A stretch of 64,000 nt of DNA from Macrostomum lignano (GCA_002269645.1 NIVC01001769.1:1-64000), one strand, 5' to 3'; shown: positions 13,294 through 56,829, counted from the first letter of the stretch. Notes: generated by a model not told the origin, from the sequence alone. Translations and numbers: made by a program.

Positions 13294-15354
13294 TTAGTTG
13301 TTAGCAGCTGGCGTAGTTGCGACCACTGGTGCTGAGATGTTGGTATTAGCAGAGGTAGTTGGTGCTGGTGGTGGAGGTGCTGAATTGTCTGTATCAGCAG
13401 AGGTAGTTTGTGCTGGTGGTGGAGGTGCTGAGTTGTTGGTGTCAGCAGATGTAGTTGGTGCTGGTGGTGGAGGTGCTGAGTTGTTGGTGTCAGCAGAGGT
13501 AGTTTGAGCTGGTGGTGCTGGTGCTGAGTTGTTGGTATCAGCAGAGGTAGTTTGTGCTGGTGGTGCTGGTGCTGAGTTGTTGGTATCAGCAGAGGTAGTT
13601 TGTGCTGGTGGTGCTGGTGCTGAGTTGTTGGTATCAGCAGAGGTAGTTTGTGCTGGTGGTGCTGGTGCTGAGTTGTTGGTATCAGCAGAGGTAGTTTGTG
13701 CTGGTGGTGCTGGTGCTGAGTTGTTGGTATCAGCAGAGGTAGTTGATGCTGATGGTGCTGGTGCTGAGTTGTTCGAATTACAAGACCAGAGGCTTTTCCA
13801 ACATTGGCGCATGTCAGAACTGACATCGGGCCTGTCGTTGACACATAGCGGGATTAAACGGCAGCTAATGCAGAGAATCGGCAAAAGTAAAATCGACATC
13901 AGTATGGCAAAACAACACGAGCCGAATTGGATGCGTGCTTTGTCAATATACTTCTCCTCCGCATAAGGATAAATACAGCGGATACAAAGGTATCCGAATC
14001 CCTGGATTAAGATAAAAATAATTAGCAGGTAAACTGCTTTCGTTAAGTGGCATTACATTATCTAAACTTAAGCTACAAATATTGCATAAAAATGTGTCTA
14101 AAAAACCGATTTACTAAAATGTATGCCATTCTATCTATCATATTCTATGTCTAGCTTGATTCAAATATAAATAAACATGATTTGAACTCACTTACACAAA
14201 TGTAGTAAATAGAAAATAGAAGTAGTACAAAGTTTGGTAACCACCAAAAAAGGCCAATTAGTAGTATGTCTCTCTTAAGGCAGTAGGACATATATTCCTT
14301 AAATTCGCTACTGTTGCAGCACGCGCCGTGCACGTAACGGGAACTGCAACAGAACGATTTCGTGCTGTTTCTGAAGTTTACATCGGTGAAAGAAACGTTG
14401 GCCAAATAATCAATTTTATCTGGGCAGACGTGCAGAAAACGAGGGCATTTCGCACAGTGTGACTTCTTCATATTTGAAATTTGCTCCATCTCTGCTCATA
14501 TACCGCCAGAGATTCTTTGGGACTTGTGTTAATTTAGGTCTCTTTACCAGCGTTGCGGAACCTCTTTTGGATCTTGAATAAAGCAAGGGTGGTGATGCAT
14601 TGTTAAATGCAGTATTCGCCTATTTAAGAGCAAGAAAGGTATAAGTAGCTACTAAAGCCTCTGTCTGATCTTACCCTTTATAATCACGCGACTCGGCGCC
14701 TAAAATGCATGAGAAGTTTAATTTAGCAGTAGTTGCTTTGAAAAACCTCAAGTTCTGATCAAAATATCAGGTAAAGTGGCTCGTTTAGCATCAACATCAA
14801 CATCACTTAATTTAGTGAATGTTGATCATAAATAGCTCGTACTTGAAAACAAAGTATTGAGATGCGGACATTGTAAAAGGAAGCGTTTTATGGTACAGAT
14901 AGGTTGGATAAATCTGTCAAAAGTTCTATTTAAAGTCCATTTTTCTTAACAGTGTGCTTATAGTTGTGCTTGCTACTCAGCTCTCCATGACCAATAAAGT
15001 AATTCACATTAGGAGTTTCCTCAAGCTTAAAAGTCCTATTCCTTTGCTCCGTTTGAAGCTATGCAGAGATTTTGGTTTGAACAAAATAAAATTGCAATAA
15101 ATCTTCCGTTCTTCACCTTAAAAGCACAACGCCTTAAAGACCTTAATTAAAAAATCAGGAATGATAGGTTGAGTCAAAAAGATTGTGATCTGATCGGCTT
15201 TGTGCTTGAACGACAGTAGCTGATATATTCTGTGTGAACAACTACAGTTTGCATTTAAAATGTGTTTAAATATGGTGAAAAACTCACCCGTCAAAAGTCC
15301 GACAATGAGCAGTGTGATAACTGCCAGTAAATGCGTAATTTGCCAATTCTTCAT
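13294..15354 (-). pseudogene. S1: Shisa-like 2-TM gene copy with an 11-bp frameshift; exons 15354-15288, 14699-14675, 14572-14196, 14001-13294
   Basis: All introns are GT-AG. Exon 3 is 377 nt versus 388 nt in S5 (TCTTCATATAA missing near 14438), which shifts the frame inside the Cys domain. Confidence 0.8.
13342..13773 (-). repeat. 48-bp coding VNTR, 9 units (NNSAPAPPAQTTSADT)
   Basis: Counted from ORF 13294-13899 (42 + 9x16 + 15 = 201 aa). Confidence 0.95.
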
Positions 15355-16194
15355 ACTCGTAAAAGTTTTGCTTGCTGTTGTGTACCTGCGATCTTGTTGC
15401 TTGGATCTTTTTAGTCCGAATGAAGAACGGCTGAGTTACGCTTAGAAATTGGGAATTCAAGGCTGATTAGAAGTCAAAAATTTCAACAGGACAACTTTTA
15501 CCATAGAAAACAGATTTGCAAGCGAAAGCCCAGCGGGAGTTCTGCTTTTCGACTAAAAATTTGTATAACACAAGCCCTAAGCTATTCGCTTTCGTTAGTT
15601 TACCTTTTTCAAGCTTACTCTTCTCACGAATTTCCACTGCTATGCTGCTTTGCATATAAGCGTCAGGTTAATTGGTACCTTACCATTTTTCGTAATATAA
15701 CCTAAATTCGATGGCAAAATTCAGTAAAAATTTACTCATCGTAAATAACAATTATGTTTTCTAGCGAGGAACGCCGACGGGTACCTTAGATAGATTAGTT
15801 GAAGAGAAAGGTGCACGAATTCTTATGTAAATATGGAACCAAGGACTACGAAGCACACCGGACGGGAAACTACGTTTTTGGCAAATTTTAGGCGGTAGCT
15901 TTTTGAATAATAATTTACGGAGACAGCTAGGGATTTGCTGTTACAGCACAAAAGCTATTAACGCTTTTTCATAGGTGACAAATCCTATATTCATCTTTTG
16001 ATAGTTTTTGTCTTTCTTTTACCTCTATTGATATTCATAGAGCTTTTCGTTAGCAAAGAAGAATTTTCAACTGTTATAAATCTATAAAACTATAAATCTT
16101 ATGTACATTGCTTTGAATTCGTTAGTAAAAGTAACGGAAATGTTGAAAATTATATCAGGGCTTAAAATCATCAAATAGCTGACCAAGTCAGTTA

Positions 16195-17365
16195 AACAGC
16201 TGATCAATTGAGCCAAACACAGCTGATCAATTAAGCCAAACACAGCTGATCAATTAAGCCAAACACGGCTGATCGATTGAGCCAAACACAGCTGATCAAT
16301 TAAGCCAAACACAGCTGATCGATTGAGCCAAACACAGCTGATCAATTAAGCCAAACACAGCTGATCAATTAAGCCAAACACAGCTGATCAATTGAGCCAA
16401 ACACAGCTGATCAATTGAGCCAAACACAGCTGATCAATTGAGCCAAACACAGGTGATCAATTGAGCCAAACACAGCTGATCAATTAAGCCAAACACAGGT
16501 GATCAATTGAGACAAACACAGCTGATCAATTGAGCCAAACACAGCTGATCAATTAAGCCAAACACAGCTGATCAATTGAGCCAAACACAGCTGATCAATT
16601 GAGCCAAACACAGCTGATCAATTGAGCCAAACACAGCTGATCAATTGAGCCAAACACAGCTGATCAATTAAGCCAAACACAGCTGATCAATTGAGACAAA
16701 CACAGGTGATCAATTGAGCCAAACACAGGTGATCAATTGAGCCAAACACAGCTGATCAATTGAGCCAAACACAGCTGATCAATTAAGCCAAACACAGCTG
16801 ATCAATTGAGCCAAACAAAGCTGATCAATTGAGCCAAACACAGCTGATCAATTGAGCCAAACACAGCTGATCAATTAAGCCAAACACAGCTGATCAATTG
16901 AGCCAAACACAGCTTATCAATTGAGCCAAACACAGCTGATCAATTAAGCCAAACACAGGTGATCAATTGAGACAAACACGGCTGATCAATTGAGCCAAAC
17001 ACAGGTTATCAATTGAGCCAAACACAGCTGATCAATTGAGCCAAACACAGCTGATCAATTAAGCCAAACACAGCTGATCAATTGAGCCAAACACAGCTGA
17101 TCAATTGAGCCAAACACAGCTGATCAATTGAGCCAAACACAGCTGATCAATTGAGCCAAACACAGCTGATCAATTAAGCCAAACACAGCTGATCAATTGA
17201 GCCAAACACAGCTGATCAATTGAGCCAAACACAGCTGATCAATTGAGAAAAAAACACAGCTGATCAATTGAGCCAAACACAGCTGATCAATTAAGCCAAA
17301 CACAGCTGATCAATTGAGCCAAACACAGCTGATCAATTGAGCCAAACACAGCTGATCAATTGAGC
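16195..17365. repeat. 23-bp tandem array CTGATCAATTGAGCCAAACACAG
   Basis: Directly visible. Confidence 0.98.
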
Positions 17366-17560
17366 CAACTTAACTCTGCTTTGCTTCAATTCATCCAGCT
17401 GTAAAATGGGTGCCAGCATTAGCTGGGATAATTGAGGGTGTGTAGCGACCCCCCCCCCAGTCCTTGGACTGAACAGCCGATCGCAGCCTTCAGATGCGCC
17501 GCGCAATAGCTGCGGCTGAGCTGTCGGTTGCAAATTTTCCTATTAGGGCAGTTGTAATCA
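17355..17560 (+). mobile_element. Headless SINE body (CORE/Meta-like central domain), same family as 56140-56405
   Basis: CTTAACTCTGC...CCAGCTGTAAAATGGGTGCCAGCATTAGCTGG...AGTCCTTGGACTGAACAGCCG matches the reverse complement of 56140-56330. Confidence 0.7.
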
Positions 17561-17864
17561 ATTTTTTTATCGTTACCTGCGTTCCTTTTTGGCTCTCTCG
17601 CGTGGCGCGTGTACATTTTACATGTATAAAATCAAACTTCTGCTCTATCAAATTACCAGAGTGGCTTGGGATTCAGGCTAGGAGAACCAGCCATGGTTCG
17701 AGTAAAAAATTCATGAAACAATTCATCCTAGAAGTTGGTTCCTCCACTTTCCTAGTACCTACGCTGCTGTAACTACTGAATTATTTTGCATCAAAATATG
17801 ATTTTGAGCCAGAATTGTACAAACAATACGATATGAGCTAAGGTAAGAAGGGAATGATGCTGAG

Positions 17865-19466
17865 TGGGAATAATGCTAAATGGGGAATGATGCTAAAGGG
17901 GGAATGACGCTAAAGGGGGAATGATGCTAAAATGGGGAATGATGCTAAAGGGTGAATGATGCTAAAGGGGGAATGATGCTAAAAGGGGGAATGATGCTAA
18001 AGGGGGAATGATGCTAAAAGGGGGAATGATGCTAAATGGGGAATGATGCTAAAAGGGGGAATGATGCCAAAGGGGAAATCATGCTAAAGGGGGAATGATG
18101 CTAAAGGGGGAACGATGCTAAAAGGGGGAATGATGCTAAAAGGGGGAATGACGCTAAAGGGGGAATGATGCTAAAGGGGGAATGATGCTAAAAGGGGGAA
18201 TGATGCTAAATGGGGAATGATGCTAAATGGGGGAATGATGCTAAAAGGGGAATGATGCTAAAAGGGGGAATGATGCTAAAAGGGGGAATGATGCTAAAGG
18301 GGGAATGAGGCTAAAAGGGGGAACGATGCTAAAGGGGGAATGATGCTAAAAGGGGGAATGATGCCAAAGGGGAAATCATGCTAAAGGGGGAATGATGCTA
18401 AAGGGGGAATGATGCTAAAGGGGGAATGATGCTAAAGGGGGAATGATGCTAAAAGGGGGAATGATGCTAAAGGGGGAATGATGCTAAAGGGGGAATGATG
18501 CTAAAAGGGAGAATGATGCTAGATGGGGAATGATGCTAAATGGGGGAATGATGCTAAAAGGGGAATGATGCTAAAAGGGGGAATGATGCTAAAAGGGGGA
18601 ATGATGCTAAAGGGGGAATGAGGCTAAAAGGGGGAACGATGCTAAAGGGGGAATGATGCTAAAAGGGGGAATGATGCTAAAGGGGGAATGATGCTAAATC
18701 GGGAATGATGCTAAAAGGGGGAATGATGCTAAAAGGGGGAATGATGCTAAAGGGGGAATGATGCTAAAGGGGGAATGATGCTAAAAGGGGGAATGATGCT
18801 AGATGGGGAATGATGCTAAATGGGGGAATGATGCTAAAAGGGGAATGATGCTAAAAGGGGGAATAATGCTAAATGGGGAATGATGCTAAAAGGGAGAATG
18901 ATGCTAAATATGGAATGATGCTAAAAGGGGGAATGATGCTAAATGGGGAATGATGCTAAAAGGGGGAATGATGCTAAATCGGGAATGATGCTAAAAAGGG
19001 GAATGATGCTAAAAGGGGGAATGATGCTAAATGGGGAATGATGCTAAATGGGGGAATGATGCTAAAAGGGGAATGATGCTAAAGGGGGAATGATGCTAAA
19101 AGGGGGAATGATGCTAAATGGGGAATGATGCTAAAAAAGGGGGAATGATGCTAAATGGGGAATGATGCTAAAAGGTGAAATCATGCTAAATGGGGAATGA
19201 TGCTAAAAGGGGAATGATGCTAAAAGGGGAAGTCATGCTAAATGGGGAATGATGCTAAAAGGGGAATGATGCTAAAAGGGGAATGATGCTAAAAGGGGGA
19301 ATGATGCTAAAGGGGGAATGATGCTAAAAGGGGTAATGATGCTAAAGGGGGAATGATGCTAAAAGGGGGAGTAATGCTAAAGGGGGAATGATGCTAAAAG
19401 GGGAAATCATGCTAAAGGGGGAATGATGCTAAAAGGGGGAATGATGCTAAAAGGGGGAATGATGCC
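17865..19466. repeat. G-rich 16-17 bp satellite (GGGG(G)AATGATGCTAAA(A))n
   Basis: Directly visible. Confidence 0.98.
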
Positions 19467-20501
19467 TGTTGTGGGTTGATGGCTTTGCCATAGACATTTT
19501 TGTTACGCGACTGCGTTGATGAATTGAACCATGCTATTGAGTTATGAAATAAACAATAGACGCGTCAGAGGTCAGCAGACCGCTAGACTGACAATTGCTA
19601 AAGGCTAAAAGCCAAAAGCACAACAGTGGCGTCGCAAGCATAGGCTACGAAAATGCCTGGAAGTACGCCAGCATCGCCAACTAAAGGAGTTGGTAAAACG
19701 GTTTCGAGCGACAAAGCACCACCGCTTGCGATCTCGTCGAAATCAGTCCAAGCGACAAAGTCGGCAACAGCGACAGCGCAGAACCCAAGCGCACAAGTAT
19801 CGAGAGGACAGCAAGTTGACATCGAAAAACTCGATGAAAGTTCGAACTTCCAGAGGTGGTTGGACCGATTCACACTGTGCAGCGAACTCAACGGCTGGCA
19901 GGACGACACGAAAAACAAGCTGCTGCTGATGAAGCTCAGCACCAAGCTGTACGACGCATTGGCAGATCGAGCCGCTCCCAAGAAGCCGGGAGAAAAGAGC
20001 TTCGATGAACTGATCAAACTACTGGCCAGCATCCTGGAACCAAAGACGTTCGTTATGGCTGAGAGATTCAATTTCCAGCATATCACTCGCACGGCATCAA
20101 TGAGCATTCGTGAGTATGCACAGCAACTCTGCATGCAGGCAGACAAGTGTCAGTTTGGCCTATCCAGAGATGAGAGACTGAGAGATCAGCTCGTATTCGG
20201 TTTGAATGACAAGGTGGCCATCAGCAAGTTATTGGAACAGGACTTCAGCACTCTCACGTTTGAGACAGCTATCAACATCGCTGAAGCGCACCAGAACCTA
20301 TCACAAACGCAAATACTAAAGGGTTGCACCAGTCAGCCGCAGTCTTCTGAAGTAATGAAAATTTCAGCATCGGTGGCCAGAGGCTCCCACTCTACAAGCC
20401 CCAAGTGTGGCAGATGTGGCACAATGCATGGCTCCAATGGAGGGTGTCCTGCGAAAGGAAAAACGTGCAACAAATGTGGCATGCAAAACCACTTCGCAAC
20501 A
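19467..20501 (+). mobile_element. Internally deleted Ty3/gypsy element: 159-bp LTR (19467-19625), PBS and gag, flanked by a 5-bp TSD (ATGCC)
   Basis: TGTTGT...CAACA with an internal AATAAA, then G-TGGCGTCGCAAGCA (PBS-like), then the gag ORF. The right end is ...GCAACA|ATGCC. Confidence 0.85.
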
Positions 20502-20525
20502 ATGCCAAAGGGGAAATCATGCTAA
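19653..20525 (+). CDS. Ty3/gypsy gag (Mag-like), truncated in the second Zn knuckle
   Basis: FQRWLDRF, AERFNF, RDERLRDQLVFGL, CGRCGTMHGSNGGCPAKGKTCNKCGMQNHF. The last codons derive from the satellite. Confidence 0.85.
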   Translation: MPGSTPASPTKGVGKTVSSDKAPPLAISSKSVQATKSATATAQNPSAQVSRGQQVDIEKLDESSNFQRWLDRFTLCSELNGWQDDTKNKLLLMKLSTKLYDALADRAAPKKPGEKSFDELIKLLASILEPKTFVMAERFNFQHITRTASMSIREYAQQLCMQADKCQFGLSRDERLRDQLVFGLNDKVAISKLLEQDFSTLTFETAINIAEAHQNLSQTQILKGCTSQPQSSEVMKISASVARGSHSTSPKCGRCGTMHGSNGGCPAKGKTCNKCGMQNHFATMPKGKSC

Positions 20526-20885
20526 AGGGGGAATGATTCTGAGTAGCACGTAGCTACTAGACTAAAAAACATTCCATCTCGAAAATGTACAATCTTTTGA
20601 GTGCAGTGTTTTTATGACTGTAGTCGTGAATATTTCTTATTTAATTTTTGTCGAGACATTTTATCGAGTAAAAGAGCAGTTTTTCAGTATTTAAAATTCG
20701 AATTTCAATATTTTTGAAAAAATAATTATCAATAAGACTAAATATTTCGAAGCATTCTTTGATATTTGAACTTAAATTTCTCAACATAAATGCTCAGCTT
20801 TACTTTGGGGCATAATAATGAAAATTCAGAATTTTATAGTTTGTCGGTACAGATGTTGCTCATTGATTTAGTTTTTGGCATCTCA

Positions 20886-21155
20886 TTATTGCTTTTGTGG
20901 CGCTTGCTGGATCGAGTCATTGCTTCCAGAATACTTGTATGGAGGAGGCGGCGGTGGCGGAGGGTATTGCTCTGGCCACTGCTGGTGCATCGGGGGGTAT
21001 TCTGGGCGAATCTGCGGCTGTGTGAAGCCTCCATATGGATGTGCCTGCTGGTGCGACAGGGAGTCCTGCTGCAGCTGCAACCCTTGATAACTCTGCTGCT
21101 GCTGCTGCTGCTGCTGCAGGCTTCCATGTTGCTGTTGTTCCTGCTTTTGAAAACC
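20886..21155 (-). pseudogene. S2: orphan last exon (Gln/Pro-rich PPxY tail), duplicate of S6 exon 4
   Basis: Intact acceptor TGTACTCAG|GGT and 90 codons ending ...YPPPPPPPPYKY...QKQ*. The upstream exons were not duplicated, because the block ends in (TAAC)n. Confidence 0.8.
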
Positions 21156-21239
21156 CTGAGTACAGGGGATGCAATCATTGAAATTTATTGCTAGCAGCAA
21201 TAAATACAGTCCTATGAAATTTATAATTTAATAACTACC

Positions 21240-21883
<644 letters not shown>

Positions 21884-24471: not shown

Positions 24472-26432
24472 ATGATGAGTTCGCGAATCAACCGTTTACC
24501 TGCAGCTGTCGTACTGCTCATAGTCGGATGTTTATTGGGTAAGTCTTCCGCAACATATTGATGTTTATTGGGGGCCGTAAACCAGCGGTAGCGCAGCTGC
24601 TCTGGTGTGCCGCGACCCAGGCTCGATTCCAAGTGCAGCCACATTAATTTGGGGCTGGATTGGAATCTTGGCTTGGCTCGCTTGTGCAATTAACGGCCTT
24701 GAGAGCCAACCCCCCAAGGCGCAGTGAAGTGTACATGCCTAACAATTGATAAAGTTAGGGCCGCTGTACACTCCTGTGTGAGTGTGTGCCTGCGTAACGT
24801 ATCCGCGCGCTTGTATGCCTGCTCAGGGGAGTCGGCGGAATGGGCAGTAATGCCTCTCGCCGGTTGTGTGCAAATGACGCTTAAATTGCGCCAGGGTGCA
24901 CACAACCCCCTGCCTCTAAAAAATGCTCTGCTTTTTATTAATTAGTATGCTTCCCGAGTTATAAAATACTTCAGATTCCGTTTCATGAATTTTTTGCCAG
25001 AAATTCGCGATTATGAAACTTGAGATTAGGATCCTTGAAAACCCCCTATAGAGACGAAATTATAAATCCTATATATAGTATTAAAACCGCAAATACTACG
25101 TATTTGTCTATTTCATAAACCTACACTAAAACAAGTCTGGAAACTAATCGTGGTGATTATTTAAGTTTGCGACACCACGCAGGAGTTTTGAGAGGTACCA
25201 AATCAGAGAAAACTTCCACAAAAGGTCCAGGGTTCGGGGGAGTCTTCAGCAGGTGGCCTGTCCACCCTTTCGGTTGTAGCTCTTGTCCTGGACAGGGACT
25301 TCAGCTGGCTTTGGGCCCAGATTGGGAAGCTTCCGCTGCCCGCGGGCCCATGGCCCACTTTGCCTTGTAAAATCGGCGGCAGGCAGCTCCAGAGGTGTTG
25401 CTCATGCACCTGCCTTTTGGCATCGCTCAGGAACTGCTCCAAGGGTCCCGTCGGGGCGTCTTTAATGGTAGCAGGTTGGGACAGAGGCCAAACTAGACTC
25501 GTACCGCAGAGTAGTTTACCACGTCATTATGGGTCATAGGGGCCAACAGTCTCTCCATTTACTGGCCTGAACTTCAATAGATCCTCAAATCTTCATTCAA
25601 GATTTGGTCAGCAAGTGTTTAAAAATCCTCTTTACACTAAACTCCCGCCATTCCTTTTCTTCTGGTGCATGGAATTGGACCAACGAAAACCAAGGATTTT
25701 AGATGCTGATCAAATTTTCAAGTAGGCCTTGTCGCCAATTCATGCTATTACGATTCTGCTGCATTGAAATTCCCAGCTAACTTTTACGTAGGAACTACGT
25801 ACATGTAGAATTACCAGCAGTGCAATATAAAACGCCAAGAAATTCTTCGAAAAGTATTTTCCTATGCTTATACGTATAACTTCTGATCAATTTTAGGCGG
25901 CGTCTGTTTGAAAGATTATAAAGGGTAAGACTAGCAATGTGTTTATTAGTCACTACCTTTATTTTTAAATTAGACAATACTGTATTATTTAACTATCATT
26001 ATCTCGTTTCACTTTAGAGGCAAAAGAGGTTCAGCAGAGCTGCTCAAAGGAGACAAAGTAAAGGTGTCCAGTAGTCTCAGGCAGTATATGGACAGAGACG
26101 GAACCGATTTTAAATATGACGAAGTCACAGTGTGCGAACTAAAGAATTCAGAGCTACAGGCCTGCCCTGATAAGGTTGACTATTTGGTCAACGTTCCCTT
26201 CTCTGAAGTGAGCTCTAAAGCCAGCACGAGATCCCACTGCTGCGAGTCTTCGTGCTGCACTGCTGATGTCCAATTTGCGTTGAAATTAATAAGTGACGAT
26301 AGTCGGTCACGCTACATATTACAATTACACATTACAATTTACAACGTAAATTGCCGATTGCTTTGGGAATACTTCTCAATTTTGGAAAGGATCATTAACA
26401 AGGAATCTAAGGAATTGTTGGCGCAATTGTAG
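24472..26432 (+). CDS. S3: Shisa-like protein lacking the TM helix (169 aa); exons 24472-24538, 25897-25924, 26018-26432
   Basis: Signal peptide MMSSRINRLPAAVVLLIVGCLL|GTAAGT, a 28-bp microexon (GVCLKDYKG) and C-x9-C-x24-CC-x3-CC. The frame is continuous to TAG. May be a pseudogene. Confidence 0.65.
24571..24922 (+). mobile_element. tRNA-derived SINE (family B) in S3 intron 1
   Basis: tRNA-like head with B-box-like GGCTCGATTCC and a short A tail. Absent from the homologous S4 intron. Related copies at ~27035-27420 and probably ~54760-55010. Confidence 0.65.
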
Positions 26433-27713: not shown

Positions 27714-29532
27714 ATGATGAGTTGGCGGATCAACTGTTTACCTGCAGCTGTCGTACTACTCATAGGCGGATGTTTAATGGGTAAGTTTTCCGCAACATAA
27801 TTTAAATTTATCTTGTATTACATGCTCTGCTCTTTATTAATTAGTATGTTTCCTGAGTTATAAAATACTTCAGATTCTGTTTTATGAATTTTTCATAATC
27901 CAGAGATTTAAGACCCCCGAAAACCCCCCTATTATAGCGACGAAATTATAATCCTATATTAGTATTAAATACGCAGATATTACTTATTTGTCTATTTCAT
28001 AAACCTACACTACGAGTAAAACAAGTCTTCAGCAGTTGTCCTGTCCACCCTTCCGGCTGCATCTCTTGTCCTGGACAGGGACTTCAGCTAGCTCTGGGTT
28101 CAGATTAGAAAGCCCTGGCCCGAGGGCCTTGGGGCCCACAGCCTCAGCATTTATTGGCCTGAACTTCAATAGATTGCTCAGACTTTCATTAAAGATTAGG
28201 TCAGTAAGTTCATCCAGTGTTTTTTTAAAAATCCTCTCAGCACTAAACTCCCGCCATTCCTTTTCTTCTGGTGCAACGAAAACCAAGGATTTTAGATGCT
28301 GACCAAATCTTCAAGTAGGCCTTGTCGCCAATTCATGCTATTGCGATTCTGCTGCATTGAAATTCTCAGCTAAATTTTACGTAGAACTATGTAGAATTAC
28401 CAGCAGTGCAATATTACACGCTAAGAAATTCTTCAAAAAGTATTTTCCTATGCTTTTACGTGAAACTTCTGATCAATTTTAGGCTGCGTCTGTTCGAAAG
28501 ATTATAAAGGGTAAGACTTGCAGTGTCTTTATTAGCCACTACCTTTTTATTTTTAAATTAGGCATTACTGTATTATTTAACTATCATTATCTCGTTTCAC
28601 TTTAGAGGCAAAAGAGGTTCAGCAGAGCTGCTTAAAGCCAAAGGTGACAAAGTAAAGGTGTCCGAAAGTCTCAGGCAGTATATGGACAGAGACGGAACCG
28701 ATTTTAAATATGACGAAGTCACAGTGTGCGAACTAAAGAATTCAGAGCTACAGGCCTGCCCTGATAAGGTTGACTATTTGGTCAACGTTCCCTTCTCTGA
28801 AGTGAGCTCTAAAGCCAGCACGAGATCCCACTGCTGCGAGTCTTCGTGCTGCACTGCTGATGTCCAATTTGCGTTGAAATTAATGAGTGACGATAGTCGG
28901 TCACGCTACACATTACTTGTTGTGTCAGTAGTTTTACCCTTTGCCATTTTGATGCTCACCGTTTTATGCCGACTGTGTGGTGTAAGTCAACGCGAATCTC
29001 ATGTTTGGGTTTGAATTCTCGTAGGGGTAGAGGCATTTAGATTTCAGACCGAATATTTATATAATGGCAAGAATTCTAGATCCTTAACTTGCGTCCTGAG
29101 ATCGGGGCAATAGCTTTCAGATTGTCGACTATTCTGGGTTATATATGGCATCACTAGTGCCATATACCTGTAGCTACTGTGCTTATCTGGTGTAAATACT
29201 TAACAAAGTGAATATAAATCAACTAATTGCCTTTCTTTATGCAGCTACTTATATACTGCTGTAGCGATCCGGATGCGAAAAATGAACGTATTGCCGATTG
29301 TTATGGGAATACTTCTAAATTTTGGAAAGATTCATTAACATTTATCCTAATGCATCGGGAAAATCTGTTTTGGAAGACAAAGGAATCTGTTTTGCTGGCC
29401 CAGACAGAGGAGCCGTGGCGAGAGATAAGGAGGCTCAAGGCAGCCAGGAGGAGAAGGAAAACAAGAGCCAGACGCCTAGAAGTGAGGAGAGAACGTGAAA
29501 AACCCCCCAGGCCGCCGCCAGGCGGGGGTTAA
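27714..29532 (+). CDS. S4: Shisa-like type I membrane protein (~252 aa); exons 27714-27780, 28483-28510, 28606-28981, putative 29245-29532
   Basis: Signal peptide MMSWRINCLPAAVVLLIGGCLM, microexon GCVCSKDYKG, 6-Cys domain, TM LLVVSVVLPFAILMLTVL, then CRLCG|GTAAGT. Exon 4 is less certain and runs into LTR-derived sequence. Confidence 0.75.
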
Positions 29533-29807
29533 TAAAGGAGCGCAGAAGGGTTAACATAATGTATGCGGAGAGTTTCCATTGGCTGGCGAGATAAAAACAA
29601 GAAACTGAAATTATTGATCGCGCGAGATCCTACAGGCGTACGCAAAGATTACAAAGTACGCAGTGATTTAGCAATTAATACAAATTCGTTGCGCGCTACT
29701 ACAAGTAAACGTGAGAATACGAGATTGGAAAATTTAAATGAGAAATTGTAGGGAAATTGTAGTCCAACGGCCCTTTTGTGGGACCACTTAAAACTGACAA
29801 CATCACA
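29394..29807. mobile_element. Partial copy (right-hand ~410 bp) of the 23650-24408 LTR-like element
   Basis: Aligns to 24015-24408 and ends at the same ...ACTGACAAxxTCACA terminus. Confidence 0.7.
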
Positions 29808-36189: not shown

Positions 36190-36455
36190 TAATATAATAA
36201 AACAAACCAAAAATGACTTCAATAATGACATTTTCAGGTAAAGTGCAGCAGGATTAGGTATATTTTGCTTTGCTTTGGAGCATTAAATAAATTGTAGTAG
36301 GAGCTTTCGTGATACGCTATAACACATCAATATAGGTTCGGTGTTTTTGATGTTGTTGCTTTTTCAGAGCAATGCATCCACTTTCTTCAAATGATTATTC
36401 AGTTATACAATACTGAATTGTAGGCTGTAACATGCGTAGTTTGATCATCTATCGA

Positions 36456-40415: not shown

Positions 40416-40914
40416 CAACTTAACTCTGCTTTGCTTCAATTCATCCAGCTGTAAAATGGGTGCCAGCATTAGCTGGGATAATTGAGGGTGTGTAGCGACC
40501 CCCCCCCCCAGTCCTTGGACTGAACAGCCGATCGCAGCCTTCAGATGCGCCGCGCAATAGCTGCGGCTGAGCTGTCGGTTGCAAATTTTCCTATTAGGGC
40601 AGTTGTAATCAATTTTTTTATCGTTACCTGCGTTCCTTTTTGGCTCTCTCGCGTGGCGCGTGTACATTTTACATGTATAAAATCAAACTTCTGCTCTATC
40701 AAATTACCAGAGTGGCTTGGGATTCAGGCTAGGAGAACCAGCCATGGTTCGAGTAAAAAATTCATGAAACAATTCATCCTAGAAGTTGGTTCCTCCACTT
40801 TCCTAGTACCTACGCTGCTGTAACTACTGAATTATTTTGCATCAAAATATGATTTTGAGCCAGAATTGTACAAACAATACGATATGAGCTAAGGTAAGAA
40901 GGGAATGATGCTGA

Positions 40915-42516
40915 GTGGGAATAATGCTAAATGGGGAATGATGCTAAAGGGGGAATGACGCTAAAGGGGGAATGATGCTAAAATGGGGAATGATGCTAAA
41001 GGGTGAATGATGCTAAAGGGGGAATGATGCTAAAAGGGGGAATGATGCTAAAGGGGGAATGATGCTAAAAGGGGGAATGATGCTAAATGGGGAATGATGC
41101 TAAAAGGGGGAATGATGCCAAAGGGGAAATCATGCTAAAGGGGGAATGATGCTAAAGGGGGAACGATGCTAAAAGGGGGAATGATGCTAAAAGGGGGAAT
41201 GACGCTAAAGGGGGAATGATGCTAAAGGGGGAATGATGCTAAAAGGGGGAATGATGCTAAATGGGGAATGATGCTAAATGGGGGAATGATGCTAAAAGGG
41301 GAATGATGCTAAAAGGGGGAATGATGCTAAAAGGGGGAATGATGCTAAAGGGGGAATGAGGCTAAAAGGGGGAACGATGCTAAAGGGGGAATGATGCTAA
41401 AAGGGGGAATGATGCCAAAGGGGAAATCATGCTAAAGGGGGAATGATGCTAAAGGGGGAATGATGCTAAAGGGGGAATGATGCTAAAGGGGGAATGATGC
41501 TAAAAGGGGGAATGATGCTAAAGGGGGAATGATGCTAAAGGGGGAATGATGCTAAAAGGGAGAATGATGCTAGATGGGGAATGATGCTAAATGGGGGAAT
41601 GATGCTAAAAGGGGAATGATGCTAAAAGGGGGAATGATGCTAAAAGGGGGAATGATGCTAAAGGGGGAATGAGGCTAAAAGGGGGAACGATGCTAAAGGG
41701 GGAATGATGCTAAAAGGGGGAATGATGCTAAAGGGGGAATGATGCTAAATCGGGAATGATGCTAAAAGGGGGAATGATGCTAAAAGGGGGAATGATGCTA
41801 AAGGGGGAATGATGCTAAAGGGGGAATGATGCTAAAAGGGGGAATGATGCTAGATGGGGAATGATGCTAAATGGGGGAATGATGCTAAAAGGGGAATGAT
41901 GCTAAAAGGGGGAATAATGCTAAATGGGGAATGATGCTAAAAGGGAGAATGATGCTAAATATGGAATGATGCTAAAAGGGGGAATGATGCTAAATGGGGA
42001 ATGATGCTAAAAGGGGGAATGATGCTAAATCGGGAATGATGCTAAAAAGGGGAATGATGCTAAAAGGGGGAATGATGCTAAATGGGGAATGATGCTAAAT
42101 GGGGGAATGATGCTAAAAGGGGAATGATGCTAAAGGGGGAATGATGCTAAAAGGGGGAATGATGCTAAATGGGGAATGATGCTAAAAAAGGGGGAATGAT
42201 GCTAAATGGGGAATGATGCTAAAAGGTGAAATCATGCTAAATGGGGAATGATGCTAAAAGGGGAATGATGCTAAAAGGGGAAGTCATGCTAAATGGGGAA
42301 TGATGCTAAAAGGGGAATGATGCTAAAAGGGGAATGATGCTAAAAGGGGAATGATGCTAAAGGGGGAATGATGCTAAAAGGGGTAATGATGCTAAAGGGG
42401 GAATGATGCTAAAAGGGGGAGTAATGCTAAAGGGGGAATGATGCTAAAAGGGGAAATCATGCTAAAGGGGGAATGATGCTAAAAGGGGGAATGATGCTAA
42501 AAGGGGGAATGATGCC
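40915..42516. repeat. G-rich 16-17 bp satellite (copy 2)
   Basis: Directly visible. Confidence 0.98.
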
Positions 42517-43550
42517 TGTTGTGGGTTGATGGCTTTGCCATAGACATTTTTGTTACGCGACTGCGTTGATGAATTGAACCATGCTATTGAGTTATGAAAT
42601 AAACAATAGACGCGTCAGAGGTCAGCAGACCGCTAGACTGACAATTGCTAAAGGCTAAAAGCCAAAAGCACAACAGTGGCGTCGCAAGCATAGGCTACGA
42701 AAATGCCTGGAAGTACGCCAGCATCGCCAACTAAAGGAGTTGGTAAAACGGTTTCGAGCGACAAAGCACCACCGCTTGCGATCTCGTCGAAATCAGTCCA
42801 AGCGACAAAGTCGGCAACAGCGACAGCGCAGAACCCAAGCGCACAAGTATCGAGAGGACAGCAAGTTGACATCGAAAAACTCGATGAAAGTTCGAACTTC
42901 CAGAGGTGGTTGGACCGATTCACACTGTGCAGCGAACTCAACGGCTGGCAGGACGACACGAAAAACAAGCTGCTGCTGATGAAGCTCAGCACCAAGCTGT
43001 ACGACGCATTGGCAGATCGAGCCGCTCCCAAGAAGCCGGGAGAAAAGAGCTTCGATGAACTGATCAAACTACTGGCCAGCATCCTGGAACCAAAGACGTT
43101 CGTTATGGCTGAGAGATTCAATTTCCAGCATATCACTCGCACGGCATCAATGAGCATTCGTGAGTATGCACAGCAACTCTGCATGCAGGCAGACAAGTGT
43201 CAGTTTGGCCTATCCAGAGATGAGAGACTGAGAGATCAGCTCGTATTCGGTTTGAATGACAAGGTGGCCATCAGCAAGTTATTGGAACAGGACTTCAGCA
43301 CTCTCACGTTTGAGACAGCTATCAACATCGCTGAAGCGCACCAGAACCTATCACAAACGCAAATACTAAAGGGTTGCACCAGTCAGCCGCAGTCTTCTGA
43401 AGTAATGAAAATTTCAGCATCGGTGGCCAGAGGCTCCCACTCTACAAGCCCAAGTGTGGCAGATGTGGCACAATGCATGGCTCCAATGGAGGGTGTCCTG
43501 CGAAAGGAAAAACGTGCAACAAATGTGGCATGCAAAACCACTTCGCAACA
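42517..43550 (+). mobile_element. Internally deleted Ty3/gypsy LTR-gag element (copy 2; 1-bp deletion frameshifts the Zn knuckles)
   Basis: Same LTR, PBS and TSD (ATGCC) as copy 1. AAGCCCAAG here versus AAGCCCCAAG in copy 1. Confidence 0.85.
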
Positions 43551-43933
43551 ATGCCAAAGGGGAAATCATGCTAAAGGGGAATGATTCTGAGTAGCACGTA
43601 GCTACTAGACTAAAAAACATTCCATCTCGAAAATGTACAATCTTTTGAGTGCAGTGTTTTTATGACTGTAGTCGTGAATATTTCTTATTTAATTTTTGTC
43701 GAGACATTTTATCGAGTAAAAGAGCAGTTTTTCAGTATTTAAAATTCGAATTTCAATATTTTTGAAAAAATAATTATCAATAAGACTAAATATTTCGAAG
43801 CATTCTTTGATATTTGAACTTAAATTTCTCAACATAAATGCTCAGCTTTACTTTGGGGCATAATAATGAAAATTCAGAAATTTATAGTTTGTCGGTACAG
43901 ATGTTGCTCATTGATTTAGTTTTTGGCATCTCA

Positions 43934-47157
<3,224 letters not shown>

Positions 47158-49890: not shown

Positions 49891-49904
49891 AATTCATTCC
49901 TGCA

Positions 49905-50594: not shown

Positions 50595-53500
50595 TTAGTA
50601 CATTTGCGGTGGTGCCATGGGCGGCGGCGGCGGGGGTGCGTACGGCATCGGCTGCGGCTGCGCGAAGCCTCCGCCAGAGCCGTAGGGCACCGGCTGCTGG
50701 TAGGGCGAGCCGAACCGCGGCGGCTGCATAATGATAAATTGGCACAAAGTTGTGACGCACTTTTAATTAATGTTTGGTTAATAAATTTAACAGCATAAGT
50801 TGTTACTTGTTGTAGTCATATCAGCAACATTAAAAAGTCGCCAAATCTATGCGTCAGTGACTATCTCTTGGACTATTCTGAAATAAAAGATACGAGAAAA
50901 CTGATCGGGGTAGCTTTAATCCACGTCCAACCCTCGCACACCGCTCCCCCACTTCATTCCTCAACTCAAGCTAGTCTGCCGCGGCGTAGCTGAGTAGCGT
51001 CACTCGCAAAGATTGAGACTTTACCTGCACTCTCAAAATTGGCGACCACAGACCGAATCTGCTGTGATGGCGACTTTTCGATATTGCTGAGTATTTGTAC
51101 CTGACTGTCACAAAAAAACTGCTATCGATGCAAAGTATTTTCTCCGTAAAACCGGCCTCCAGAAAACTTTCCAAGAAACGTACTTTCCCGTTCTAATTAA
51201 GTAGTCTTTGTTGTCTACGTTGCATTGCTCCCACACTTTTTATTAATCGGTGGCATTTAGTTGTTAATCACGTCGCGCTATGGTGAACCAATTAGCAAAT
51301 ATTCTGAAATTCATTTTCACTCTTTCAACAATGCAAAAGGTTATCCTTAAAATGATCGCCATCTTGATACAGACACGTCCAGGTTCCCTGCCCCTCCCCG
51401 CTATGTTTTGCGCTCCCTCCCTTTTCCCGTGTGATTCCTGCCCCCCCATGATGACTAATTGAAAATGAGTTATCACAATGACTCAAGCTTATCGCCCACC
51501 CACTCCCTCGAGCACCAACCCCACCCTCCTTTCTATTGTTCGAAATCATTCATGCGTGTGACAGTTTTTATGACCCCACATCTCCCCAAGCTTTTCCTGC
51601 CTGTTACGTAATCCCCAATCATCAGTGGCGTAAATAGGGGGGATACGGGGATATATCCCCCCATTTTGATGATTTATAGGAAACGAAAATGAGGATTTTT
51701 GGGAAAAAATGCAAAATAAAGCGGCATAGACGCAGCAAAATTGCCAAAAATGGCTTATTTTACCCGTAATTACTATTAAAATGTTTTAAACGATTATTTT
51801 CGCGAATCCCTAGTTCCTAAAATGTCGAAGATAGAACAGACGTCTGCCGGATTTACTATGATTTTAACAAAGTAAAGTTTTTTGAGCCCAAAAACATGGT
51901 CTTGGTACTTTTTAATGCATACTTTTAGCAAAAAAATGAAAAAAACTTTTTCATTAGTCTAAAATTTTGTCCCTAAAAGTTATCCCTCCCCCTTTTCAAA
52001 ATCCTGTGTACGCCACTGCCAATCATGAATAGTTTTTTCTCCGTTGCACCCCACCCCAGTTTCTCGTCCAATAGCAGCGCGACTGGTGGGTGACATCACC
52101 AGGGTTGCTTGGTAACGAAGATCAAGGACAAGTCACGGCCTTCAATATCACGTATCACGTGATCGTGATCGTGTGACGCGTAGTCTCAGGGCTATAAACA
52201 AGAGCCCGTTTTAATGGCCCGAGCGGCCACCCCCGTTCTCAGCTTTAGCTTCCCTGTCCCTATAGGACAGAGTATGGCAAACTTTTTCGCTTCAAGTGCC
52301 AGATAAGGATTTTAGCTCATGTCTGCAGGCCAGATGAGAGTGAAAAAGAGAAAGAATAGAAGATAAGAGATGTGAGAAGAGAGGCATGAGATGGGATGAG
52401 AGAAAGGATAAACGAGAAGAGAGGAGGAGAGAGGAAGAGAAGGGAGAGAGGAAAGAGGGGAGTGTGGAGAGAAGGGAAAGGGAGAGGGGAGAGAAGAAAA
52501 AACCCGAGAAGAGAAACAAACCTTTAGCGGGCCGGATCGCTTTTTTGAAGTTTCGAGAGGCTTCGAGGCCCGCTTATCGCCCGCAAGCCGGAGTTTGCCG
52601 ACCCCTTCTATGGAAGGGCATCACGAGAGAGTTCTGGGACCTACCCTTCCCCATCAACATAAAAATATGGCGTTTTATCCACCCTTGGAATCCTGTGGCT
52701 TAGGAGGGAATCGTAGTCTAGAATCGCTCACCAGCTAAAAGATCCAAATGTCCTCGTTTACAGCTCTGACTAGACTGTCCATAGAGTCCCTAGTCGGCCA
52801 TTTCTAGTACAGTTGGGGTCAAGAATCTTCGTCTGTTACAGACCGGAAGTCCCGCCTCACTAGTGGGAGTTTTCACATGTGATTGGTGACTGCCGCGCCG
52901 CTGTCTATGGATAATGGGATCTTGGCCGCAACCTCAGCTACCGCACCATCCAGACGCCTGGTGGGTGTACCTTTCAGCGCCAGAGCCCAGGGGTTGCACA
53001 GAGGCGTTTTCATGCAGCTCTGTTACGTCAATCTGATTTTTAATTTTTATGAACTTTTTATCTTGTTTCACTAAATCAGATCTCCTTAAGCCATGATAAG
53101 AAAGAACTGCATTTATTACTCACCCCCATCGGCCTAGAGGCGTTGGGCCTCTGTTTGACAAGACAGAAAAACTTGCAAGCGCAAAATATGATCAAACCCA
53201 TGACCACCACTCCAAGTAAAGAGCAGATCACGATTGCTGCAATGGCTCCCGTGGACAAACTTGACTTCAGCGCCTCGAACTCGGCTTTTGTGCAGCAGTA
53301 CTGCTCGTCCTCCTCACCGCAACAATACGTCTTTGTATCAGCGTTTGACAGCAGGTCATAGTAGGACTTTGCATTGGAATCTACGTCTTCTTCTGGACAG
53401 ATAAACTGATCATACTTGCCACGGCCGGCAAAGCAGAGGGCCACATCGCTCGCTGTTATGTCCGAACGCAGTCTGTCACCTGATAATACTAGCGGTCGGA

Positions 53501-54392
53501 GTTCTTTCGAGACGTACACTGAGTTTACGTCGAAGTCCAGTTCTGAAGCGCGTCCGCCTCTGAAATGCAGAACAAACAGCTCAAATGAAATTTTGAATCA
53601 ACTTGTACTGAATTCAAATCACTGCTTTGAGTTTTTAGTTACCCCTTGTACAAGTTTCCTCTCATTTCATGAACACTTAAATCACCTGGAATGTTTATTT
53701 TTATGCGGATTTAAATGTAATGTATAAAGAATATTTTTAAAAGGCTAGAATCCCTATTGAGAATCTAAAAGAGAGTTAAAGCATTCGGAAGTGTAACTGA
53801 TCATATGGTTGAGCAGTCATATTGATCATCCAGAAGTGAGATTAATCATTTAGAGGTGAGATTGATTATCTAGAAGATAGATCATCTCAAATGTGAGATT
53901 GATCACCTAGAAATTAGATTGATAATCTAATTTGCTCATCTAGAAGTGAGATTTTGATTATCTCAAAATGAGATTGATCATTTAGAAGTGACATTAATCA
54001 TATCAAAGTGAGATTGATCATCCAAAAGTGAGATTGATTATTTAGAAGTGAGATTGATCGTCTAGAAGTGAGATTGATCATCTAAAAATGAGATTGATCA
54101 TCTAGAAATGAGATTGATCATTTAGAAGTGAGATAGATCATCTAAAAGTGAGATCTAGTATTTAAAAACTTTTTTTGATCTTCTAAAAGTGAGATTGATT
54201 ATCTAGAAATGAGAGTGACCATTTAAAAGCGAGATTGATCATTTAGAGGTGAGAGTGATCTTCTAAAGTAAGGTGAGATTGAGAATTAATTTTAAAACCA
54301 AATAATTCTGCTGAAAGCTACTTACATGTACAGTATTCTACCAAGAGAAGTAGACCAATCGCGTTCAATGAAAATACCATTTTGTATGCCAT
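50595..54392 (-). CDS. S7: Shisa-like type I membrane protein with a Pro/Tyr-rich tail (224 aa); exons 54392-54326, 53685-53643, 53559-53124, 50723-50595
   Basis: Signal peptide MAYKMVFSLNAIGLLLLVEYCT, microexon ...GNLYKG, C-x11-C-x24-CC-x7-CC, TM AIAAIVICSLLGVVVMGLIIFC then ACKFFC. 675 nt in frame. Confidence 0.87.
51623..52018. mobile_element. hAT-type MITE, 396 bp
   Basis: TIR CAGTGGCGTA...TACGCCACTG with a perfect 8-bp TSD (CCAATCAT). Confidence 0.92.
52268..52607. mobile_element. Older hAT-type MITE with a GA-rich interior
   Basis: CAGAGTATGGCAAACT...AGTTTGCCGACCCCTT with a degenerate 8-bp TSD (CTATAGGA/CTATGGAA). Confidence 0.6.
53830..54280. repeat. Degenerate 20-bp tandem array (TAGAAGTGAGATTGATCATC) in S7 intron 1
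   Basis: Directly visible. Confidence 0.9.
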
Positions 54393-54644
54393 CTTTATGA
54401 TGAATTCGTTAACTCGTTGCAGATTTTTTCTAAATCAATTTTCTTCAGAACTAAGTAAGCTTTTGTACTTCGTATTTCTCTTTTTGTTGACTTTGTGGCT
54501 ACCATGGTTTATCTATGGCATTCATCTTTCTTAATTTATTCGCATACTTTATGTGGAATATATAGTGGCTTTCAAGGCATCAATCACTAACTGTAAAAAC
54601 GTTGAATACATTAACAGACAACTACATACTTATCTTAATAAAAA
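54393..54644. promoter_or_regulatory. Putative shared (bidirectional) promoter/5' UTR region between S7 and S8
   Basis: 252 bp separate the two divergent ATGs. Inferred from position only. Confidence 0.5.
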
Positions 54645-56829
54645 ATGGCGTTGCAATATTTCATTTCAAGCAGTCTATCAAACCTACTTTGTTTAATTTC
54701 TATTGGATTCCTACTACCAATCAACACTATACGTAAGTGCCATGGCTTACTAATGCATGAATTGGGTTGTTGAAGCGCTATCACACATACGTACGCGTCG
54801 AGACTACCATCTTATTACGTCTGACACTTGACTTCTGGTTAGTTTTTGTGGCTCACTCTCGAATCCCAAGGTCCTGGTCACTGTACATCTTGTGTGAGCG
54901 CGTGCGAGTGCGTGCGAGTGCGTACAGTATTCACACCCTTTTTGCGCTCAGGAGTCAAAAATGGGCAGATTGCCTCACTGTTGGTTGTAAAACGATGTTT
55001 TGCGGCAAGCGAATGCAATTAATATTATTATTATTTGCACCTCGCTTATTGGGCGCCCCGAAGGGGGCACTAGATTGCTAGTCAAATATACTAAAACTTT
55101 AACTATACTATAAAAATACAATTATACCGCTGAAAACTTCTAATTTTTTTCAGACGCTCTCAATAATCTTAAGCTTCTCCGAAGTTTTGGCGATGGATAC
55201 AATGGGTAATGATTCTATTGCACGACTAGCCCCACTTTTAAATTTAAATTAAAGAACTTCTATATTCAACTTCAGCATAATAATGAGTATTTAATCAATT
55301 TTTCAGTGGAGTACGTGCCGAAGCAATTGACTTTCAGTTGGACTCGGTATACGTCCCCAATAGTTTAATGTACCTTTTTGGACAACGCAATGTCAGCCGC
55401 AGTGGCTTCTTCGATTTCCGAAGGGGCTTAGTAGTTGGCGACATCACTGTGTGCTTCGCTTCTCGAGCATCGGGAACGAGGACCTACGACAAGTTCGTCT
55501 GCCCGGAATCCGACGACGGCAGCAAAGCGAACTCCTATGCTGAATTGGTTGCCAGGCCGTCTGCGAAGTCCTACTGCTGCGGCCCTGGCGGCAGCCAGAG
55601 ATGCTGCACACATGACCAATACTCGTCCGGAGACAAACGCAAGCCGTCTCCGAAAGATTCGGACGAAAAGTCCGGCTTATCAAAATCCATGATAGCCATC
55701 ATCTGTGTCAGCTCAGTTACTGGCGTCGTTCTAATTGGCCTGGTGATATTCTGCATCTGCCATGGTTGCCGCAATAGGAAGCCGGTAAGTTGGTCAGAAA
55801 CATTTTGTTTTTAAAATAATCGTAGTTACAGCTTAGACATATACATGCGTCTGTTTTCTAGGTTGCATTTCGAAATTGTGTCGATCTTATTCTTAACCTG
55901 ATTTTATGCAACGCTTAAAAATAAATTCTATAAAAACAATTAACCTGCCCTGTGGCAACTCGGCCTACTTTGCAGACTCCTAAGCACATACAAGCTCGCC
56001 AAAACTGTATATCCGGTTACGAGCTCATGCACTGCGAGGTTCTCTCCCAGGGTGAACAGCAATCTGCCCTCTCTGTGCCTTGAGAGTTGACCCCCATGGA
56101 AGTGAATTGTATTAAATAATAATAATATTAAAAATAATTGATTACACCTGCCCAATGGGCAGATGTGCAACCGACAGCTCAGCCGCAGCTATTGAAGGCT
56201 GCGTACGGCTGTTCAGTCCAAGGACTGGGGGGTCACCACACACACTCTCAATTAACCCAGCTAATGCTGGTACCCATTTTATAGCTGGGTGAACTGAAGC
56301 AATGCAGAGTTAAGTGTCTTGCTCAGGGACACAAATTGTTGCAGTGGGATCGGAAATCGAACCCCCGACCTTCAAGTCGTGAGTCCGACTCTCTAACTCC
56401 CCTCCAAGTTTCAGGTGCACCAACCATACGACAAGGGGCGAGTTAAACTTTATAGAAGATTAGGACATTCATTGCACTTGATGTATACTAACTCGATAAT
56501 GCATATAATTTATCTGATCGGCAGGTAGGAGCCTATAAAAAATGAATCTTAAAACCATTTTTCAACATTTTTCGTCATACCAGCAAGCGCCGCGTTATGG
56601 CGGGCAACAGCAACAACCGGCAGGTCTTGGAGGAGGCTACGCTCAACCAATGCCGCCGCCGATGCGGCCGCCGATGCCGCCGCCGATGCGGCCGCCAATG
56701 CCGCCGCCGATGCCACTGCCGATGCCGCCGCCGATGCCGCTGGCACAGCCGATGCCTCTTCCCACGGCTCCGCCGCCGCCCCTAGCTCCGATGCCCCAGA
56801 GGTTCCCTCCGCCGATGTATCACCAATGA
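54645..56829 (+). CDS. S8: Shisa-like type I membrane protein with a Pro/Met-rich PPxY tail (287 aa); exons 54645-54732, 55154-55205, 55307-55784, 56584-56829
   Basis: Signal peptide ...LLCLISIGFLLPINTI, microexon ...GDGYNG, C-x15-C-x24-CC-x7-CC, TM MIAIICVSSVTGVVLIGLVIFC then ICHGC, tail ...FPPPMYHQ*. 864 nt in frame. Confidence 0.87.
56140..56405 (-). mobile_element. tRNA-derived SINE (family A) with a CORE/Meta-like central domain, in S8 intron 3
   Basis: Minus strand: tRNA-like head with GGTTCGATTTCC, then GTGTCCCTGAGCAAGACACTTAACTC...ATAAAATGGGTACC. Superfamily assignment is from recall. Confidence 0.7.

Follow-up and report, generated by a model that had tools for sequence, protein, structure and literature searches.

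Here we describe a tandem cluster of six-cysteine membrane-protein genes, S1 to S8, in a 64-kb stretch of the genome of the flatworm Macrostomum lignano (positions 1-64000 of NIVC01001769.1, assembly GCA_002269645.1 (Mlig_3_7); hereafter the window). The cluster had been proposed from the DNA alone as a set of Shisa-like genes comprising seven spliced models and one orphan exon. A six-frame scan of the window for the pattern C..C..CC..CC picked out seven family exons, at 14.3 kb (-), 26.1 kb (+), 28.7 kb (+), 37.3 kb (-), 45.7 kb (-), 53.3 kb (-) and 55.5 kb (+), and in most of these open reading frame (ORF) segments the pattern is followed by a hydrophobic helix. The segment at 53.3 kb, from S7, matches a Macrostomum lignano protein at 100% identity. 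An eighth occurrence of the pattern, at 656-808 (+), has neither a profile match nor a transmembrane (TM) helix and was treated as chance.

Gene models were rebuilt from the DNA with the annotated 224-amino-acid (aa) protein as template and then checked by script, and a family profile was made from six exon-3 translations (alignment A1). The profile recovers exactly seven loci in the window, the same seven as the models, with E values of 1e-32 to 1e-57 that exclude chance. The predicted structures hold to the base after rebuilding: seven genes of three or four exons and one orphan exon (Table 1), bounded at 13294 and 56829 by the stop codons of S1 and S8.

Table 1 Genes of the cluster and duplicated segments within the window
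Feature	Position	Strand	Exons or content	Description
S1	13294..15354	(-)	15288-15354, 14675-14699, 14196-14572, 13294-14001	frameshifted S5 copy
S2	20888..21155	(-)	polyglutamine (polyQ)/PPPY tail, AG acceptor, open frame	orphan copy of S6 exon 4
S3	24472..26432	(+)	24472-24538, 25897-25924, 26018-26432	truncated S4-type copy, 169 aa, no predicted TM
S4	27714..29532	(+)	27714-27780, 28483-28510, 28606-28981, 29245-29532	subgroup A, intact-looking, 252 aa
S5	36456..38334	(-)	38268-38334, 37656-37680, 37166-37553, 36456-36971	subgroup A, two predicted TM, 331 aa
S6	43934..47157	(-)	47100-47157, 46051-46087, 45494-45956, 43934-44209	subgroup B, 277 aa
S7	50595..54392	(-)	54326-54392, 53643-53685, 53124-53559, 50595-50723	subgroup B, 224 aa
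S8	54645..56829	(+)	54645-54732, 55154-55205, 55307-55784, 56584-56829	subgroup B, 287 aa
Segmental duplication copy 1	13034..21883		S1, 23-nt + 17-nt satellites, DUF7083 ORF, S2	from self-comparison
Segmental duplication copy 2	36191..44946		S5, same satellites, DUF7083 ORF, S6 exon 4	from self-comparison

A conserved exon layout

All introns are GT-AG, and wherever the first, second and third introns are present they lie in phases 1, 2 and 0, respectively. The signal-like peptide is encoded by exon 1 (58-88 nt), which finishes in phase 1; exon 2 (25-52 nt, with a length that is always 1 mod 3) supplies a short linker that closes in a conserved (Y/F)(K/N)GG, and its end is in phase 2. Exon 3 (376-478 nt) ends in phase 0; its product is an ectodomain of 100-150 residues with six invariant cysteines, followed by a cysteine-lined TM helix. 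Exon 4 supplies a lineage-specific tail. As had been claimed, summed exon lengths are multiples of 3 in every gene except S1: the coding sequences measure 510 nt in S3, 759 nt in S4, 996 nt in S5, 834 nt in S6, 675 nt in S7 and 864 nt in S8. The S1 exons sum to 1177 nt (remainder 1) because exon 3 carries an 11-nt deletion relative to the near-identical S5.

The cysteines arranged as C, C(P), CC and CC are invariant across all six aligned copies, which gives the C*C*CC*CC pattern, and the ectodomains of S6, S7, S8 and the family member P0011 contain exactly six cysteines, probably paired in three disulfides. The loops between the cysteines differ greatly among paralogues. Hydropathy predicts an N-terminal hydrophobic, signal-like segment in all genes and a single TM in S4, S6, S7, S8 and P0011, two in S5 and none in S3. 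In an AlphaFold2 model of S7 exon 3 (predicted local distance difference test score, 76.6), short strands bearing the cysteines precede a long helix.

Two subgroups with conserved exon structure, A (S1, S3, S4 and S5) and B (S6, S7 and S8), had been distinguished and were recovered here. hhalign shows the two to be homologous (95.5%, E 1.4e-8), and intron positions and phases are identical. In subgroup B, the tail of S6 combines polyQ with PPPY (at residue 258), and that of S8 is a (PPPM)n run ending in PPMY. For S6, a merged exon 1+2 starting from an ATG at ~46160 was considered and dropped in view of the annotated first exon at 47100-47157. S7 and S8 lie head to head with only 252 bp (54393-54644) between their divergent start codons, which suggests a shared bidirectional promoter.

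The cluster runs past the window, to PAA64269.1 (378 aa) at 75.7-78.3 kb of the record and to a second gene (254 aa, ~80.4-81.3 kb), which has short canonical loops, a cysteine-rich TM and PPPY. Beyond both of these additional Shisa-like genes is a gene for a 384-aa protein with a fibrinogen C-terminal domain (record ~84.5-85.9 kb; L004 2465-3837). Fibrinogen-related proteins are often immune lectins in invertebrates. The window itself has a CpG observed/expected ratio of 0.74, and Rfam and tRNA scans across its 64 kb returned no matches.

Affinity to Shisa-like proteins

The STMC6 superfamily (Pei & Grishin 2012), in the form in which it is described in PMC5578492 and PMC11399591, comprises proteins with a signal peptide, a C*C*CC*CC ectodomain, one TM and PY motifs. 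We compared the cluster proteins with its Pfam families at the gathering cut-offs of 22 bits for Shisa_N and 31 bits for CYYR1 (PF10873). S7 scores 25.4 bits against Shisa_N and is the only cluster protein to pass; P0011 (19.9 bits), the 254-aa neighbour (16.8), S6 (16.7) and S8 (15.8) fall below the cut-off. Shisa_N is nevertheless the top or only ectodomain Pfam match in five members, always over the CP..CC..CC segment.

Run exhaustively with HMMER against 1.84 billion representative proteins, the family profile gave 11 matches, 10 of them from M. lignano. The single match outside Macrostomum is a 'shisa-4-like' protein of the hemichordate Ptychodera flava (XP_070578740.1, E 1.8e-6), itself a member of the Pfam CYYR1 family (44.8 bits), and subgroup B aligns with it in hhalign (98.2%, E 4e-14). 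The stretch that carries this affinity, 'TKSYCCG..Q.CC..EF', is close to the hemichordate sequence. When exon 3 of S7, exon 3 of S4 and the hemichordate protein were used as queries in word-indexed searches, only Macrostomum proteins or the query itself came back. Canonical PPxY motifs are found in S6 (PPPY) and S8 (PPMY) and are lacking in S4 and S5.

Because of these profile and hhalign matches, and because the layout is the one that defines the superfamily, we place the family in STMC6. The cluster is, with moderate confidence, a divergent, Macrostomum-restricted Shisa-like branch, and the Shisa-like label appears reasonable on profile evidence that is weak. As for the proposed PY tail, a canonical PPxY was found in S6 and S8 but in neither S7 nor subgroup A.

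Several observations count against this placement and against the role that we propose below. The Shisa_N scan of subgroup A gave no match, and family consensus queries reached only 15.6-15.8 bits, no gain over single sequences, which leaves the Pfam match marginal. The hhalign overlap with XP_070578740.1 covers just the CC..CC segment, the TM and the first residues beyond it, and a TM inflates such scores. Relative to Shisa_N the ectodomain is roughly doubled in size: it has an N-terminal extension of ~45-60 residues, and its C2-C3 loop comprises 24 residues (columns 65-97 of alignment A1). A Foldseek search of the S7 exon-3 AlphaFold2 model against the PDB, and a profile search of PDB sequences, found no match. 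A canonical PPxY is lacking both from S7, whose sequence closes with PPQMY and whose motifs are limited to PPxxY and xPxY variants, and from the very proline-rich P0011. Finally, the literature and the portions covered of two supplement sets, queried with gene identifiers (Mlig031649, Mlig022124 and others), yielded no expression, localisation or interaction data, a negative that does not extend to absence from the germline and neoblast lists.

Some of the same facts would fit a family unrelated to Shisa-like proteins, that is, a lineage-specific, cysteine-rich, single-pass membrane family in which CC..CC beside a TM arose by convergence and which does something other than ligase adaptation. 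Its profile finds almost nothing outside Macrostomum, Shisa_N sits at or below its cut-off and is not raised by consensus queries, the ectodomain is larger than Shisa_N and without a structural match, and PPxY is missing from S7, P0011 and subgroup A. Convergence would not readily explain, however, why five divergent members all match Shisa_N at one and the same position, why 'TKSYCCG..Q.CC..EF' so closely matches a bona fide CYYR1-family protein, why signal peptide, six cysteines, TM and proline-rich tail follow in the order that defines the superfamily (PMC5578492), or why the neighbouring 254-aa member has canonical short loops together with PPPY. We regard an unrelated origin as fairly unlikely.

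Within the superfamily, one of the closest likenesses is to CYYR1: common to both are the signal peptide, the small six-cysteine ectodomain, a single TM that contains and is followed by cysteines, and a proline-rich tail (with PPxY in S6 and S8); UniRef names one copy CYYR1. The cluster proteins differ from CYYR1 in the extra ~45-60-residue N-terminal part of the ectodomain, in a much longer C2-C3 loop, in carrying at most one PPxY motif (CYYR1 has three), and in showing no detectable orthology. The CYYR1 cut-off was not reached (best score 16.4 bits, for S7 exon 3), and the family is unlisted for the full-length proteins. Shisa proper (PF13908, Shisa1-9) shares the CP..CC(G)..CC core, the single pass and the proline-rich tail, but the scores are marginal and the match spans approximately positions 14-44 of the 50-position profile, omitting the region of the first cysteine. 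Shisa proper also has additional cysteines after its CC..CC core. With WBP1, WBP1L (OPAL1), VOPP1 and TMEM92, other STMC6 proteins that serve NEDD4-family ligases as adaptors, the likeness lies in the architecture and in the presumed PPxY-to-WW-ligase mechanism only, and no sequence match to them was detected here. The nematode CX module (PF01705) is likewise a six-cysteine module of small, lineage-expanded membrane or secreted proteins and is an automatic UniProt label in this cluster; PF01705 is absent from our Pfam scans at E <= 1, and the UniProt assignment was not reproduced.

Existing annotation and transcript support

Contrary to the original prediction, the cluster is for the most part not hidden. 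Four of its genes are in GenBank, as PAA64264.1 (S5), PAA64265.1 (S6), PAA64266.1 (S7) and PAA64267.1 (S8), and UniProt labels S5, S6 and S7 'CX domain-containing' and uses 'Shisa N-terminal domain-containing' within the cluster as well. The GenBank annotation was built from genome-guided StringTie/TACO assemblies of RNA sequencing (RNA-seq) data, from which repeat-overlapping transcripts were dropped (PMC5730564), and this provenance is indirect transcript support for the junctions of S5-S8. The lineage-specific branch is new; most of its member genes are already annotated.

The rebuilt S6 and S7 proteins are residue-identical to PAA64265.1 and PAA64266.1, and S5 has 331 aa in the rebuilt model as against 299 aa in PAA64264.1. 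PAA64267.1 (272 aa) reads the last exon of S8 in a shifted frame, which produces an Arg/Cys-rich tail. The GT-AG junction 55784/56584 instead gives a 287-aa protein with a proline-rich tail, which agrees with UniRef A0A1I8GDV2 except at a few residues and with the copy on NIVC01003254.1.

Only S4 and the broken copies (S1, S2 and S3) are unannotated. GenBank has no gene between positions 26456 and 36456 of the record (26.5-36.5 kb), and the S4 gene model is thus new. S3/S4-type copies are present in databases as fragments only (P0003, P0004 and P0013). Two of these, UniRef A0A1I8GAG3 (P0003) and A0A1I8J3U2 (P0013), bear the automatic names 'PDGF_2 domain-containing' and 'Site-specific DNA-methyltransferase', which are unsupported by anything seen in their sequences.

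Duplication, transposons and decaying copies

Self-comparison of the window reveals two blocks of 8.8 kb that are 98-99% identical (Table 1). This segmental duplication made S1 from S5 and the orphan S2 from exon 4 of S6. Copy 1 ends in a (CTAA)n microsatellite (21286-21883), with S2 just inside the block end, and copy 2 ends in an (ACTA)n microsatellite within intron 3 of S6 (44284-45452); the family profile found no exon-3-like sequence upstream of S2. In S1 the 11-nt deletion shifts the frame and creates stops; exon 4 is undamaged and encodes a 16-aa repeat ~11 times over (48-nt array at 13326-13773). S1 is a probable pseudogene and not a functional variant.

The block with S1 and S2 could in principle be an assembly artefact, a nearly identical second copy of the S5-S6 interval mis-joined in a PacBio assembly of a neopolyploid genome. 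The M. lignano assembly is described as redundant to a substantial degree (PMC5730564), blocks of at least 95% identity adding up to 180 Mb; the divergence between the two blocks here, 1-2%, is about that seen between separate contigs (the L005 locus described below matches both at ~97.7-97.9%), and the duplicated block ends in a microsatellite and beside a repeat. It is nonetheless embedded between unique flanks inside a 240-kb contig, and S1 has private lesions in its deletion and its larger repeat array. A mis-join seems to us improbable.

S3 had been read as a secreted variant. S3 and S4 are tandem copies, ~90% identical, whose frames part after 'SRSRY': S3 has lost the TM, its third intron and the first part of exon 4 to a deletion, and what remains of exon 4 is now read out of frame. 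Directly behind it, a 1215-nt repeat (26427-27641) abuts the S3 stop codon. An inverted copy at 11670-12884 is 99.4% identical, and the insertion is thus recent. S3 looks like a pseudogene rather than a variant: a deletion derivative with a transposon behind it, from a lineage that evolves near neutrality (see below). S4 looks intact here, with the last ~139 nt of exon 4 inside a repeated element (29395-29807 ~ 24013-24408), and its counterparts on two other contigs are broken, by a premature stop four codons past the TM in L005 and by a frameshift in L006.

The tail of S5 consists of Ser/Thr/Pro-rich 16-aa repeats (48-nt array at 36492-36743), each with an NNS sequon. Repeat number in S5-type tails varies, from ~11 in S1 to 5 in S5 and 6+5 in L005, where the array is split. 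At this last locus (L005 11898-16198, NIVC01001132.1) the 48-nt coding array is interrupted by an insertion of ~4.3 kb, which is spliced over in the 6.4-kb GenBank model PAA71860.1 (302 aa).

The region is transposon-dense, as had been stated, with Helitron, mariner, long interspersed nuclear element endonuclease and long terminal repeat integrase fragments and two DUF7083 ORFs. A Helitron-like ORF pair (1879-3333, Rep/Helitron_like_N; 3372-4889, PIF1 helicase) is followed by a 5.7-kb satellite of 15/34/49-nt units (CCATCCAGTCAGCAA...) that starts at 4890, exactly where the pair ends (window 1879-10650); the Helitron 3' end may carry the satellite or have seeded it. A mariner/Tc1-type element at 31279-33053 is apparently complete, with a 365-aa DDE transposase ORF (31668-32765) between 214-nt inverted repeats (31279-31492 / 32840-33053) that are 99% complementary. 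Minisatellite arrays of 23-nt and 17/35-nt units (~50 and ~90 copies; 16196-17368, 17850-19465, 39177-40418 and 40901-42515) sit between S5 and the S6 tail and were duplicated with them; L005 has a shorter version.

Selection and turnover of the family

Three other contigs carry near-identical copies of the cluster (loci L001, L005 (NIVC01001132.1) and L006), as expected from the redundancy of the assembly. We compared S5-S8 and the S3/S4-type genes with these copies and estimated the ratio of non-synonymous to synonymous substitution rates (dN/dS) by the Nei-Gojobori method. Against the L001 copy, dN/dS is 0.34 for S6, 0.15 for S7 and 0.39 for S8. Pooling S5, S6, S7 and S8 gives 0.44, from 14 silent and 21 replacement changes, a significant deficit of replacements (binomial p 0.017). 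S5 differs from its L005 copy by 6 replacement changes and 1 silent change, counts too small to interpret. The S3/S4-type copies give ~0.7 (S3 against S4, 0.72-0.78), which fits decay; the L005 copy has a premature stop and the L006 copy a frameshift. The paralogues have diverged to the point of dS saturation and must therefore be old; there are approximately seven types, each 95-99% conserved between contigs.

Subgroup B is intact, transcribed and under purifying selection. The pairwise dN/dS comparisons contain no positive evidence for diversifying selection; the actual variation lies in copy loss and in how many 16-aa repeats an S5-type tail contains. The birth-and-death evolution that had been proposed stands as far as duplication and decay are concerned but not as diversification, and such turnover, although real, is expected from a neopolyploid, repeat-rich genome anyway.

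These results bear on a reading that builds on the original prediction: a fast-diversifying locus of recognition receptors, with an immune, allorecognition or reproductive role, in which variable ecto-loops, secreted forms and two-TM forms are functional variants that birth-and-death evolution under positive selection has kept. Features that could be read in this way are the restriction of the family to Macrostomum at the sensitivity of HMMER, the strong divergence of the inter-cysteine loops between paralogues, the variable repeat number of the S5-type tail, the presence of duplicates and pseudogenes, and the excess of replacements in S5, too few to test. Set against them are the low ratios of S6-S8 and a pooled value significantly below 1, the age, small number and conservation of the paralogue types, the origin of the 'secreted' S3 as a transposon-flanked deletion product, the frameshift in S1, and tails of S6 and S8 that bear adaptor-type PPxY motifs and not signalling domains. 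We consider a diversifying recognition locus very unlikely. The earlier observations were confirmed in detail, and their interpretation is partly supported.

A proposed adaptor role

It is, in our judgement, probable that the tandem cluster is a Macrostomum-restricted STMC6 branch of type-I membrane proteins, with subgroup B most likely serving as NEDD4-type adaptors. We hypothesize that the Pro/Gln-rich cytosolic tails of S6 and S8 would dock, through PPxY, onto WW domains of HECT ubiquitin ligases of the NEDD4 family. Human CYYR1 binds the WW domains of WWP1 and WWP2 via PPxY, and WBP1L is an adaptor in the ubiquitination of CXCR4 (PMC11399591). By analogy with these proteins, subgroup B members would be single-pass membrane adaptors that steer how partner membrane proteins, or the ligases, are ubiquitinated, sorted in endosomes and turned over; we infer both the ligase binding and the adaptor function from that analogy.

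Subgroup A, in this scheme, has lost the PY tail. S5 gained a predicted second TM and a tail of variable-number, probably glycosylated 16-aa repeats, and S1 and the S3/S4 lineage are decaying copies. Because S5 is predicted to cross the membrane twice, its repeats would be exposed outside the cell, and this predicted topology is unusual for the Shisa-like superfamily. Copy turnover stems from segmental duplication, transposon insertion and neopolyploidy, and not from demonstrated diversifying selection. There is a slim chance that the extended ectodomain and the S5-type architecture instead mark a new branch of surface receptors for lineage-specific recognition, in which copy and repeat variation would be functional and not decay; if so, the extracellular part of this branch might recognize, for example, mating partners, sperm or microbes.

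The cluster opens no new kind of biology. It does show segmental duplication and transposons remodelling genes in a neopolyploid genome, and the practical gain for annotation is a corrected frame for the S8 tail in GenBank, the addition of S4, and the flagging of S1 and S3 as pseudogenes and of S2 as an orphan exon. Shisa-like adaptors, still poorly understood, adjust how much of receptors such as Frizzled, FGFR, AMPA receptors and CXCR4 is present at the cell surface. A compact, lineage-specific cluster of them in a flatworm that is open to transgenesis and RNA interference would offer a place to test such adaptors in a stem-cell-rich, regenerating animal.

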